In this document: positions 21,078 through 25,573 of the stretch, piece by piece | Layout: every line of letters starts with the position of its first letter | How positions within the stretch are numbered: position 1 is the stretch's first letter | Assembly (NCBI RefSeq): GCF_000315625.1 | Contig: NW_005434406.1 | Coordinates: 1 to 41,751 of the forward strand | Origin: Guillardia theta CCMP2712 | Lineage: Eukaryota > Protista > Cryptophyta | Length of the DNA stretch: 41,751 bases | Direction: 5' to 3' | Translations under genes and position numbers: made by a program | The notes under the pieces: generated by a model | Database searches by the model: none | The model's input: only the letters and a program-made list of their open reading frames with translations | Told to the model about the DNA's origin: nothing

Positions 21078-24000
21078 ATGGAGGGGAACTCAACCAGCTC
21101 AGACGTCGCAAAGAAGAACGCAGCTAATGGCGTTGGCTTCAACAATACCCACCTACATGGCGGCAAATCAGGAGGAGGAGGACGAGGACAAGGAGGAGGA
21201 GGAGGAGAAGGAGGAGGGTTCGACAGCCAGATGCCTTTCTTGTTGCAGGACAAGCCAGATTACATCGACGTCGATTGGCTCAAAGAGCTCCAAGCGTGCA
21301 AGACCAAGAGAGAGCTGATCAACACGATACACAGCAAGAACCTTACCTCGCAGCGGCAGCACCCGCTCTTCGAGAAGGTGCTTGCCTACGTGTCCACCGA
21401 CCAGCGGCTCAGGAGCGAAAAAAGCAGGAACCACCTGATCGAAATCGCGCTGTGGATGATGGAGAAAAAGCAGAGGACGGGGCCCATGGGTGAGTCTCCC
21501 CTCCACCTCTTCTTCCTCCTGGAGCAGGGAGATATTGGGCAGGAGATCATCAAGAAGGAGGTAGAGAGGAGGAAGCCCAAGGACGCGGCGGAAGAGTTCA
21601 GGCACTACAAGGAGCTTGTGAACACACCGTACGGGAGTGACCTGAATATCGTCTTAAAGCCCAGGGATCATCCGCCTCCTCTTCTGGGGCAGCTCCAGGA
21701 GCAGGTCAACCGGATTTTTTCGGACAAGCGAGCGAGAGAGCGGCAGCAGGGGGAGCAGGAGAAGGGGAAATCTGCAGGGAACGGTGCGTTCAGGTACGGG
21801 GATAATCATCCGATTGACGAGGCGCTCAAGACGTACGCGGAGGGAGGAAGGGACGGAGGGATGTTCACCGGAGAGACTCCGCTGCACATCGCGATCGTTC
21901 AGCATGACAGGAAGCTGGTGAAGTGGCTGCTGGACCATGGGGCGGAGCTGCATGCGAGGGCGATGGGGATTTTCTTCCAGCCCGGCATCATCGAAAGGTT
22001 CAGGGACGAGGAGTGGGTGTCGTGGAACAAGAAGGAGAAGAACGAGAAGGGAGGGGCGTGCTACTACGGTGAGCTGCCGCTGAGTTTCGCAGCTAGCGTT
22101 GGGGATGTAGAGATTTGCCAGATGCTGCTGGATCGAGCGAGGGAGATCATCGAGAAGGAAGACGACGATGAGCTGATTGAGCTGCTCCACCGCTGGACCC
22201 AAGACGAGCTGGTGATCCCGAACACAGGTGAGAGGAAGAGGAGGGATGGAAGGAGGAGACGAGCAGGAGCAGCAGAAGAAGAAGCAGCAAGAGCAGCAGC
22301 AGCAGCAGCAGCAGCAGCAGCAGCAGCAGCAGGAAGAGGATGAGAGGCAGGAACAGGAAGAGAAAGAGAATCTATCTGAAAACTGGAGAAGAGAAAGAAA
22401 AGGTGGAGGCTGTGTTTAAGAAGTAGGAAGAAAACGAAGGGCAGAGGAAGAATTGTCCATGGGGGAAGAGCAGGAGGCAGCGGCGGCAGCAGCAGCAGCA
22501 GCAGCGGCATCAGCAGCAGCAGCAGCAGCAGCAGCAGGGGCAGGAGGAGGAGGAGGAGGAGGAGGAGCAGCAGCAGCAGCAGCAGCAGCAGCAGCAGCAG
22601 CAGCAGCAGCAGCAGCAGCAGCAGCAGCAGCAGCAGCAGCAGCAGCAGCAGCAGCAGCAGCAGGCAAAGCTGGCAAGCAGGTCTTGATATTCTCTCTCCC
22701 GCAGACGACCCCAACTTCAAGGACGAAGAAGCTCTGCTGAACTCGTACATCAACATGAGCGACGCCAGGGGCAACACGGCCCTCCACATGGCAGTGATGC
22801 ATCGCCAGAAGGACACGATCGATTGGCTGCTCAGAAACTCTGCCGACCCCTCCATGGAGCTGCTCAACGATGACGACTTCACTCCTCTCACCCTCGCGGT
22901 CCGGTCTGACGCTCCAGAAATCTTCAACCACCTTGTCTCGAAGATCCATGAGGTGGCCTGGTCTTTCGGTACTATCCAGATGACCGTCGTGCCGCTGCAT
23001 CAGCTGGACACCTTCCGGAGCTCCCTGCTGATTCCCAGCTCCACCAAGCACCGCGCTCCTGCCACCAAGGAGACCTACAGGATGAGAGTGCGGTCAAAGC
23101 GGTACCTCGACGAGAAGAAGCACGAGAAGAAGATGAAGGAGGATTGGCTGAGGAAGTACTGGCTTGACCGCGTTGTGTCCGTCGCCCGCTGGCTGGGAGG
23201 GACGAGGAAGAGGTTGGAAAAATGCATACGCCCGCACAAAGTGGTCGACGCGACCTCCCTGACCGACTCGCTGCACAACGACCCGCACTGGAGGAGCGCG
23301 CTGGAGGTTGTAGTGGAGCACGAGATCAGTTCCTTTGCAAGGGAGCCCATCTTCCAAGACCTCGTCTTCGAGAAGTGGATCAAGTTTGGACGCACCAGCC
23401 ATCTCCTCTACACTCTCCTCCCCTTCACTGTCTTCCTAATCGCATGCACCGTCGCCTTCGAGAGGAGGTGCAGGCAGATCTGGTCACAGACGGTGAACAC
23501 GGGGGTGGAGTGGTCTATCAACAAAGCTCCCCTCTGGTTCTTCATCGCCCTGGATATCCTTATCTACCTGATCGGGATTCCCTTCCTCCTCCTCCAGGCG
23601 CGCAAGCAGCTCAGGTTCCGCTACATCGACATCGACCCCAACATGGACCTGTCCTGGAGCTTCGACGAGCTGATCTTCTGGCTCTACAAGAACCTGATCT
23701 TCCTCCTCCACGTCGTCGTCGTCGCCTTCCTCGTCGTCATCGCAACTATCCGCCTCTGCGTCACCGGCGACTTTGCGGGCTGGTACCACGTCAGACCCGA
23801 CTACTACTTCAAGGGGCTCGAGCTGAAGATGATGGCGTGGGCGATGATGTTGCTGTGGTGTACCTTCCTCCAGCTCCTCCTCCCCTTCCGCTTCGTGGGC
23901 CCGCTACTGATGACGGTATGGCGCATGCTGATAGGGGACGTCTTCAAGTGGATCATAGTCTACCTCTTCATCCTCGCTGCCTTCTCGCAGGCTGTCTACA

Positions 24001-25573
24001 TCCTCATCCAAGACGTGGCCATCTCCGAAGGGCTCGTGCAGGACGGCTCCGTCGTCTTCGGCCCAGCTGGATCCGAGCTGACCGTCAACCCGGCATCCAA
24101 CTTCGACTACATGAGCACGTACGTGTGGGTAACGTTCGGGGACGTCCACCAGGGGCTGCTGGACGCGATCGGGTCGATCCGGGTTGACATCTGGACGCTC
24201 CACATCATCTTCATCGCGCTTTCGACGCTCTTGCTTGTCAACCTGCTCATCGCCATTATGGGCAACACGCACAGCAAGAACGAGAGCGGCGCCGGGACAG
24301 ACATGTGGTGGATGTTTCATGCTTACTACGTACTGAGGATCGAGTCGAACCTGTCGAGGGCAGAGAGGAACAGGCTGAGGAGCGGGGAGAGGATGGAGCA
24401 GCTGGAGAATGCGGGAGACGAGAGCAAGCACTTCAGGGTGAGGGTGGAGAACAGGAAGATGGAGATGGCGGGGGGAAGCGCGGACGTGCGAAACTACTCG
24501 GACGAGCGGGAGATCCGCAAGATGTTCCGGGAGAAAGACCCGCTGGGGGAGGGGGTCGTGCACGACTTCGCGCTCCTCGACGCCATGTGCGAGGTGATGG
24601 AATCAGTGAACCCTGGGGTGGAGGTACGCAGGCACGAGGTGTACGAAGTGATCAAGCACGACCTGAAGAAGCACGAGTGCTCGGAGCAGGAGATGATCGA
24701 GTTCTTCAAGTGCTGGGTCCCTCCCGAGCGGGAAAGAAAGGCCCTGATCCTGGTGGACGTGCAAGGCGAAAATCTCCAGCGATGGAACATCGGAACGCAG
24801 AAGTATCCGCCCGAGCTGACGAACCTGCTGTTCCCCCAGCAGTTCGATCTCGTGCTATGGACCAAGGACGTCAACGATCCCAGGAACCCGAAGAAAAGCA
24901 GGAGGATAAGGATCAAGCGAACAAGGAAGCAGCGGACGGGATGCGCCAGGCGGAGGAGGAGGGAGGAGCACCAGCAACAGCAACAGCAACAGCAACAGCA
25001 ACAGCAGGAGGAGCAAGAGGAGCAGGAGGTTACACTTCCTCCTACACCATCACAAAGGCATCGGAGTGCAAGCCGGAGATCTTGAAGGGTCTCTGTGATT
25101 TGAACACTTCAGAGCACTACGTCCTGCACAGAACGTCTGACCCCTCTTCATCCGGGGCTGGCTACTGCTCCAGCTGCTTCTTCGAGCAGAAAGTGTGGAG
25201 GGAGACTGGGCTGCGGAGGTTCTTGAAGGAGCAGAAGATAACGACTGTGGTTGTTGGTGGTTTCCTGTTCAACGGAGTTGTGGGGACGACGGCGTTGGAT
25301 GCTGTGGACTGCGGGTTCAGGTCGATTGTGGTGGACGATTGTAGTGACAATCAGGTGAGGAGGAGGAGGAGGAGGAGGAGATTGGAAGCAAGCACTATTC
25401 TCCTCTTAATCCTCTTCTTTTTCTGCACACACCCTCCCTCCCTCCCTCTCCTCCCTCCCTCTCCTCCCTCCCCTCCCTCCCTCTCTCCCTCCCTCCCTCC
25501 CTCCCTCCCTCTCTCACACTTTTTCTTATGGCAGATGAGGAGAAAGGACAAGATGAAAGATCTACTCAAGCAG
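21078..25573 (+). CDS. TRPV-like cation channel fused to an EF-hand-like segment and a C-terminal nicotinamidase/isochorismatase-like domain (3' end in N gap)
   Basis: Exon 21078-22227 has TRPV-type ankyrins (GETPLHIAIV...GAELHARAMGIFFQP...YYGELPLSFAAS). Phase-1 intron 22228-22704 joins in frame to GNTALHMAV, TPLTLA, WSFGTI..PLHQLD, KWIKFG, S5 GPLLMTVWRMLIGDVFKW, pore TFGD, S6 LLLVNLLIAIMGNT and TRP helix WWMFHAYYVLRIE. Then ALILVDVQ, FDLVLWTKD, and after a frame change TGLRRFLKEQKITTVVVGG...TTALDAVDCGFRSIVVDDCS. Last visible exon is 25535-25573. Start codon could lie further upstream. Confidence 0.9.
22262..22662. repeat. Intronic (CAG)n/(GAG)n tracts
   Basis: Within TRPV intron 22228-22704; source of spurious polyA/polyQ/polyL ORFs. 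Confidence 0.9.

Follow-up and report, generated by a model that had tools for sequence, protein, structure and literature searches.

The cryptophyte Guillardia theta CCMP2712 carries a gene in which a TRPV-like cation channel is fused to a module with the nicotinamidase fold (isochorismatase family, PF00857). It lies on a stretch of 41,751 nucleotides, further called the window, which is contig NW_005434406.1 (C268) of a genome assembly of 87.1 Mb in 669 contigs. The fusion is genuine, and channel and tail belong to a single gene and a single transcript. The explanation that we consider best, and which taken as a whole is fairly probable, is that of one nuclear gene with two introns that runs from 21078 to beyond 25573, has its 3' end inside an assembly gap and encodes a product of at least 1280 residues. 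The product would be a TRPV-like cation channel with an ankyrin domain, membrane segments S1-S6, an FGD pore and a TRP helix, followed by a tail that appears to be a strongly diverged copy of a cryptophyte protein composed of an EF-hand region and a nicotinamidase (PncA/PNC1). According to the same explanation, this tail is a pseudoenzyme and not a working nicotinamidase, and would serve in regulation, assembly or docking. An earlier interpretation of the same DNA (the sequence-only reading) had proposed a TRPV-like channel with an active nicotinamidase attached to it, i.e. a new chanzyme.

One transcript through channel and tail

Evidence at the RNA level comes from contigs of public sequencing runs that were aligned to positions 21000-26990 of the window. 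Two runs from different studies (X1 and X2) each yielded a spliced contig of 3.3 kb, in which exon 1 is covered over 21223-22224 and is joined directly to 22702-24947. On one spliced molecule, these contigs hold the ankyrin domain, the channel, the linker behind it and the motifs of the first half of the nicotinamidase-like domain (24735-24881). The joint 22224>22702, which gives GT..AG borders when the cut is shifted by +3, is found at a contig depth of 2248 in X1 and of 133.5 in X2. Since the contigs skip 477 nucleotides (nt) bounded by GT..AG, the runs are RNA-derived and the transcript is located on the plus strand. Removal of this intron keeps the frame and leaves no stop, and the start of the gene model, 21078, is the first ATG after an in-frame stop. 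The spliced contigs of both studies continue past 24735, to 24947. The sequence-only reading thus correctly described a single-gene, Rosetta-stone-like fusion in a non-animal lineage, as spliced contigs from two studies span the junction. Of what its term chanzyme implies, the sharing of one polypeptide by channel and enzyme fold is supported, as a spliced RNA contig crosses the junction and the frame is open once a missing A is added to the assembly. The parts of the gene are as follows, with the evidence for each in brackets.

21078..22227, plus strand: exon 1, with the N-terminal region and TRPV-type ankyrin repeats (Pfam Ank E 9e-11, Nanchung alignment, RNA contigs)
22228..22704, plus strand: intron 1, 477 nt, GT..AG, with an in-frame stop and long GCA/GCT-type repeats inside (joint in X1 and X2 contigs)
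22705..24506, plus strand: channel part of exon 2, with the last ankyrin repeats, beta-linker, S1-S6, pore and TRP helix (PDB matches, paralogue identity)
24507..24734, plus strand: linker homologous to the EF-hand-pair region of cryptophyte-type nicotinamidases (hidden Markov model (HMM), MAFFT collinearity)
24735..24893, plus strand: N-half of the nicotinamidase-like domain (BLASTP, HMM, MAFFT, RNA contig shared with the channel)
24893..24894, plus strand: 1-nt assembly deletion in an A-run (extra A in X1, X2 and X11 contigs)
24896..25039, plus strand: low-complexity insert, Lys/Glu/Gln-rich and then an Ala-Thr run, from CAG/CAA repeats (MAFFT, sequence)
25040..25354, plus strand: C-half of the nicotinamidase-like domain, ending at a CAG/GTGAGG donor (PF00857, PDB, HMM, RNA contigs)
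25355..25534, plus strand: predicted intron 2, 180 nt, GT..AG, with a CT-rich tract (predicted from the sequence; the stretch was repeat-masked in read mapping)
25535..25573, plus strand: start of predicted exon 3 (MRRKDKMKDLLKQ), C-terminal helix of the domain (alignment to the G. theta nicotinamidase), running into the N gap 25574-26447

The open frame 22755-25085 runs, as had been noticed from the sequence, without interruption from the channel into RKALILVDVQ (24735-24764) and FDLVLWTKDVNDP (24843-24881). The change of frame that follows was correctly noted for the assembly, but it does not mark a second exon. Contigs of X1, X2 and a third run, X11, carry an additional A after 24893, within an A-run (24890-24897). 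Because the RNA contigs are collinear through 24947 and have one more A, the frame change is a one-base assembly deletion and not an intron. With the A added, frame 0 joins frame 2 and the coding sequence is free of stops from 21078 to the donor at 25354. Introns of 29 nt or 189 nt, which had been considered as the cause of the frame change, are ruled out by the same collinear contigs. The missing A breaks the frame of the assembly and may explain why no database protein was returned for the locus.

Further downstream, a separate contig over 25029-25348 is present in X1, X2 and X11, at a depth similar to that of the channel contig. The break between the two contigs coincides with a masked CAG/CAA repeat (24948-25028). 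A few raw reads of X19, a bona fide RNA-seq library, also fall on 25000-25399. For the peptide MRRKDKMKDLLKQ of predicted exon 3, the counterpart in the G. theta nicotinamidase is SQKKMVESLKK, and its alignment to an HMM of standalone nicotinamidases extends to position 301.

The length of intron 1 is a multiple of three and it consists mostly of GCA/GCT-type repeats. Some retention of this intron is suggested by a minor X1 contig that maps within it (22375-22467; depth 242, about one tenth of the exon depth). Behind the gap, convergent neighbour open reading frames (ORFs) occupy 26929-28028 on the minus strand. Two stretches rich in Cys (CxxCxxxKxKC...CxxC) in one of them (27519-28028, minus strand) are similar to Zn2Cys6 binuclear-cluster motifs, and a loose end of an X1 contig at 26947 is probably a splice site of the convergent minus-strand gene.

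The channel part and its relatives

The architecture of ankyrin repeats, six transmembrane segments and a TRP helix that had been read from the sequence was borne out by Pfam ankyrin profiles and by matches to TRPV structures in the PDB. Ankyrin repeats score in both open frames, 21036-22343 and 22755-25085. The signature GETPLHIAIV ... FFQP ... YYGELPLSFAA is found in exon 1 (GETPLHIAIV at 21870-21897, YYGELPLSFAA at 22062-22092), and the domain is of the TRPV type, for which long finger loops and the motif FF...Y[YF]GELPLS[FL]AA are characteristic. Residues 263-355 align to residues 177-271 of Nanchung (E 1.1e-10) and also to the ankyrin domains of TRPV1/2/4/5/6. In the second open frame, S1-S6 are located at about 23403-24258, the pore loop with FGD at 24129-24144 and the TRP helix at 24303-24342. 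In a comparison with all PDB sequences, the channel matches Drosophila Nanchung best (9nvo, E 2.6e-24), in two collinear stretches. The first comprises the last ankyrin repeats and the beta-linker (query 19-104 to Nanchung 276-359, 34.7 bits), and the second runs from S4/S5 via the pore and S6 to the TRP helix, with the FGD of the pore loop and the post-S6 motif WWM..A..VL..E aligned. Next in rank are TRPV4, Inactive, TRPV1, TRPV6, TRPV5 and OSM-9-like channels. With the transmembrane part alone as query, the top 60 PDB matches are all TRPV channels (E 1e-13 to 3e-5). The Pfam Ion_trans profile scores below threshold, and in relatives only.

We use the label TRPV-like instead of TRPV because the tree of relatives took in cryptophyte-type proteins and three animal TRPV-like rows, and no other TRP subfamilies (TRPA, TRPC, TRPM, TRPN, TRPW). 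A preprint of 2026 (10.64898/2026.06.15.732144) regards type I TRPs as confirmed to date only for animals and the protists nearest to them. Including the window gene, G. theta has at least seven TRP-like loci. One of these encodes the paralogue P0001 (GUITHDRAFT_105896, locus L006), to which the channel is 44% identical over 562 residues and which is not the same gene. Identities of 29-50% in the transmembrane part were found for the six further loci (L006 on contig C22, L007 and L008 on C226, L009 on C82, L010 on C19 and L011 on C105); L007 and L008 are almost identical and lie on opposite strands, at a distance of about 7 kb. No enzyme-like tail was seen in any of these six loci.

The tail: homology, active site and distribution

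Homology of the C-terminal region to nicotinamidases of the PncA/PNC1 type, as claimed in the sequence-only reading, is supported by profile, structure and alignment comparisons. The isochorismatase profile PF00857, with which the fold was to be checked, matches the frame-2 stretch 25028-25400 above its cut-off of 27 bits (37.7 bits, E 2.9e-9, profile positions 98-148 of 175). The same match, at 35.9 bits, was returned when the entire genome was scanned in six frames, together with three full-length PF00857 domains elsewhere. The best PDB matches of the C-half are nicotinamidases (9u8m, E 1e-6; 2wt9, E 4e-6; 29iv). Against a custom HMM built from six standalone nicotinamidase proteins, the C-half scores 56-60 bits (E about 1e-20), and the linker with the N-half scores 14.9 bits (E 6.5e-7, HMM positions 33-125), a value that was reached by none of 1000 shuffles of this stretch (best 4.1 bits). 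The N-half provides strand beta1 (RKALILVDVQ) and strand beta2 (FDLVLWTKDVNDP), and BLASTP places WVPPERERKALILVDVQ on the start of the domain of the standalone protein P0005 (residues 104-124, E 1e-4). In MAFFT alignments the tail is collinear with entire cryptophyte EF-hand and nicotinamidase proteins, the linker corresponding to the EF-hand region and being followed by beta1, beta2, the C-half and the last helix. HMM and MAFFT thus find the complete domain in order, from beta1 with VDxQ via TxDxHP to the C-terminal half, with a 48-codon low-complexity insert in place of the middle loop. The segment TALDAVDCGF (25289-25318) is identical to that of the enzymes. When the N-half alone (24729-24824) was compared with the PDB, the sole match was the T1 domain of Kv4.3 (E 1.2), which is taken as chance.

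The two halves were also folded as two chains, together with three controls. Their packing scored 0.57, against 0.03 for the best control, with at least 68% of contacts in agreement between runs and a partner pLDDT (predicted local distance difference test) of at least 54. Among 78 solved complexes, 51 pass the mark used for packing, and so do 2 of 108 mismatched pairs; those that pass with scores of 0.60 or lower comprise only 5 of the 78 complexes and all 4 passing mismatches. The model thus weakly supports packing of the N-half and the C-half against each other.

The nearest relatives of the tail are standalone enzymes. An exhaustive HMMER search with the C-half against 1.84 billion representatives gave seven matches, of which P0005 is the best. 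In this protein of 305 amino acids (aa), a nicotinamidase domain is combined with a canonical EF-hand pair and, at the N-terminus, a membrane anchor. Also among the nearest relatives is P0007 (KAJ1485899.1), which is annotated as PncA in the cryptophyte Baffinella frigidus. G. theta itself possesses an intact nicotinamidase (L012 on contig C79, ORF 1336-2430, minus strand, 364 aa, PF00857 E 1e-27) that keeps the residues Asp/Lys/Cys and Asp-His-His and which, judged by its sequence, can supply nicotinamidase activity. The N-terminal region of this protein is degenerate EF-hand-like, and the family to which the protein belongs is likely the source of the fused tail. The standalone enzymes share 39-44% identity with one another, but only 22-26% with the tail.

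Some further observations concern this enzyme family. P0005, P0025 and P0026 (metagenome, Logan) unite an intact nicotinamidase with a canonical EF-hand pair and an N-terminal anchor in the membrane, which suggests that calcium-regulated, membrane-tethered nicotinamidases may occur in some protists. P0011, one of the seven C-half matches, has four tandem isochorismatase domains in 964 aa. In the G. theta genome, two full-length PF00857 domains are located in tandem about 120 bp apart (L001/L002, C76:255696-256930, minus strand), and one of the ORFs (303 aa) keeps the catalytic Cys. They probably belong to another isochorismatase subfamily, since they are absent among the genome matches to the nicotinamidase P0005.

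The active site of the fused domain is eroded. The catalytic Asp of VDxQ is kept, as VDVQ. The column of the nucleophilic Cys is occupied by Val (25277-25279; Y-D-Y-C-V-G has become F-N-G-V-V-G) in all alignments, i.e. those with PDB entries 9u8m, 2wt9, 29iv and 26st, the MAFFT alignment and the HMM alignment. In the favoured MAFFT alignment, the Lys column holds Arg (YVLHRTSD, 25118-25141, versus FVVSKGLD). PEILKGL, which had been put forward as the site of the catalytic Lys, fits the Lys column at three residues only, and the flanks (ECKPEIL with EFHPKLV, SEHYVLHR with SDYIVDK) favour the Arg column, although the placement is somewhat ambiguous. In the metal motif, TRDWHPxDH has changed to TKDVNDPRN, in which the Asp is kept, the first His is replaced by Asn and the second His is lost, so that two of three ligands are gone. 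The substrate loop WPxHCVQ is replaced by the 48-codon insert and the Phe of QNDF is lost (QGEN). The catalytic triad Asp-Lys-Cys, the metal site and the WPxHC loop are therefore not intact. The linker can be aligned with the EF-hand pair of P0005, and its loops have degenerated, the ligand positions being absent (DPLGEGVVHDFA); a canonical 12-residue calcium loop is not present, and Pfam EF-hand profiles give no match there. The tail is best considered a pseudoenzyme because the Cys, probably the Lys, two metal ligands and the substrate loop have been lost. As to the ordered nicotinamidase motifs of the sequence-only reading, order and fold stood and the assignment of the Lys in PEILKGL is probably wrong, whereas the chanzyme in its proper sense, with an active enzyme, is not supported in view of the change of Cys to Val, the probable change of Lys to Arg and the lost metal site and WPxHC loop.

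The fusion was encountered in G. theta only. PF00857 or any similarity to the tail was found in none of eight TRPV-like relatives of the channel (P0001 from the same genome, P0002 from Logan, P0003, P0012, P0013, P0015 and P0016 from ENA, and P0014 from JGI), which leaves the ancient coupling between TRPV channels and nicotinamide that had been suggested without support. The nearest channel relative is about 40% identical, and in the tree the window gene, P0001, P0002 and P0014 form an unresolved polytomy. Among the seven matches of the exhaustive C-half search there is no other channel fusion. Neither a fusion orthologue nor the protein of the locus itself came up in word-index searches with the channel, which covered proteins of 427-1358 and 496-1577 aa, or in one with the C-half, and metagenome scans with the protein and with a three-sequence alignment found nothing. 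From these comparisons, the fusion may be specific to the Guillardia lineage.

Possible roles of the tail and relation to known channels

If the tail is a pseudoenzyme, the dead alpha/beta domain would be located beneath the channel and have a part in regulation, assembly or docking, comparable to the way in which a NUDT9-derived domain is carried by TRPM2. It would act by protein-protein contacts, either by self-association or by docking of an active nicotinamidase paralogue, and not by catalysis. Several points weigh against this account. Continuity over the CAG repeat 24948-25028 and into exon 3 is deduced from similar depth and the open frame, as no single contig covers it, and the C-terminus falls in the N gap 25574-26447. 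The extra A was seen in the RNA-derived runs X1 and X2 and in X11, a run that is not established as DNA. The packing model covers the separate halves instead of the frame-joined whole domain. No orthologue with the fusion was found, and the assembly or docking role itself is an inference only.

A different, rather unlikely role is that of a ligand-sensing pseudoenzyme, in which the dead domain binds nicotinamide, nicotinate or another metabolite of nicotinamide adenine dinucleotide (NAD) salvage and gates the channel. Nicotinamide is an agonist of the TRPV channels OSM-9/OCR-4 of worms and Nanchung-Inactive of flies (PMC5064019), and the best solved-structure match of the channel, Nanchung, is a nicotinamide-binding TRPV subunit (PMC12808645). 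Furthermore, the tail retains the core of the fold as well as the Asp residues of the catalytic and metal sites, and its coding sequence is constrained. However, a role in sensing nicotinamide or NAD salvage is less likely because the residues by which working enzymes hold nicotinamide have been lost, namely the metal site (Asn in place of the first His, and no second His), the WPxHC loop and the Phe of QNDF. In the structures of Nanchung-Inactive, nicotinamide is not bound by a C-terminal domain but in a pocket of the Nanchung ankyrin domain formed by Y24, V137, L147, Y172, Y177 and F213 (PMC12808645); the alignment of exon 1 to Nanchung begins at residue 177, after the positions of most of these residues. 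The fusion is also not conserved in relatives. There is thus a small chance that the tail reports the state of NAD salvage to the pore, either by binding a pyridine metabolite or by docking the active EF-hand-nicotinamidase paralogue. If true, a TRPV-type channel would be coupled to vitamin B3 metabolism far from animals, and the fusion would, in the manner of a Rosetta stone, testify independently to the nicotinamide-TRPV link of flies and worms.

Quite unlikely, too, is a neutral relic: the 3' end of the channel gene would have captured a nicotinamidase copy, which now decays as a tail that is tolerated but has no function. The eroded active site, the 48-codon low-complexity insert, the degenerate EF loops, the identity of 22-26% versus 39-44% among working enzymes, and the occurrence of the fusion in one species only are what one would expect of such a relic. 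On the other hand, despite the divergence no stop or frameshift interrupts the 318 codons between the TRP helix and the donor; a lack of stops was seen in none of 20000 shuffles, and the other two frames have 12 and 5 stops over the same stretch. The strong GC bias at third codon positions (0.89 in the linker, 0.81 in the N-half and 0.72 in the C-half) resembles that of the channel (0.855), the helix-strand motifs of the core are still recognisable, with TALDAVDCGF identical to the enzymes, and the transcript depth over the tail is similar to that over the channel. Long divergence with an intact frame argues for a tail that has been retained with a changed function, rather than for plain decay.

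It is highly improbable that two neighbouring genes, a chimeric assembly or read-through give the appearance of a fusion protein that does not exist. The assembly indel at 24893 and the gap 25574-26447 might raise this suspicion, as might an in-frame Met (MIEFFKCW, about 24702) before beta1 that could start a separate product and the absence of a returned database protein for the locus. However, RNA-derived contigs of two studies cross the junction between channel and tail with the intron spliced out in the same contig, the homology to nicotinamidases begins about 75 codons upstream of this Met, in the linker directly after the channel, and the reading proceeds from channel to tail without a stop. 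Least credible of all is an active chanzyme that removes the agonist beside the channel: in spite of the PF00857 match, the nicotinamidases as nearest relatives and the conserved Asp of VDxQ, the Cys is Val in four independent PDB alignments as well as in the MAFFT and HMM alignments, the Lys column probably holds Arg, the substrate loop has gone together with two of the three metal ligands, and the genome has a separate intact nicotinamidase.

A channel with a non-catalytic, enzyme-derived tail, the interpretation preferred here, has a parallel in another TRP subfamily. The C-terminal NUDT9-homology domain of vertebrate TRPM2 lost catalysis and serves regulation; although catalytically silent, it binds ADP-ribose. 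In TRPM6 and TRPM7 the alpha-kinase is active. Like TRPM2, the G. theta protein is a TRP channel with a whole enzyme-derived cytosolic C-terminal domain in which catalytic residues are lost. It differs in that the channel is TRPV-like, the fold is that of isochorismatases and nicotinamidases instead of Nudix, and the fusion has been seen in one cryptophyte only; moreover, ligand binding is proven for TRPM2. With TRPM6 and TRPM7 it has in common that a channel and an enzyme fold are present in one polypeptide, whereas their kinase is active and both fold and TRP subfamily are different. The pairing of a TRPV-type channel with a nicotinamidase is shared with Nanchung-Inactive and OSM-9/OCR-4 (PMC5064019, PMC12808645), and Nanchung is the best structure match, but in animals the enzyme (Naam, PNC-1) is separate and active, and here it is fused and apparently dead. 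The cryptophyte proteins with an EF-hand region and a nicotinamidase (C79, KAJ1485899.1, P0005/P0026) are collinear with the tail over their whole length and are its nearest relatives in 1.8 billion representatives, but they are standalone (P0005 being membrane-anchored) and have kept their active-site residues. In the searchable literature, no TRPV-nicotinamidase fusion, no chanzyme paired with an isochorismatase and no work on Guillardia TRP channels was found, in agreement with the earlier supposition that this architecture was previously undescribed.

The importance of the fusion is limited by the facts that the domain looks dead and that the fusion has been seen in one species only. Nevertheless, TRPV-like channels are clear in a cryptophyte, with at least two close paralogues and several more distant ones, and these provide sequence for testing the view of the 2026 preprint cited above. 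With the isochorismatase/nicotinamidase fold joined to a TRP channel, enzyme-derived tails are now of three kinds, the others being the Nudix domain of TRPM2 and the alpha-kinase of TRPM6/7; the enzyme seems to have become a non-catalytic domain here, as it did in vertebrate TRPM2. Since the fusion partner is derived from the enzyme that removes nicotinamide, an endogenous agonist of invertebrate TRPV channels, the G. theta protein offers a direct test of nicotinamide-TRPV coupling outside animals.

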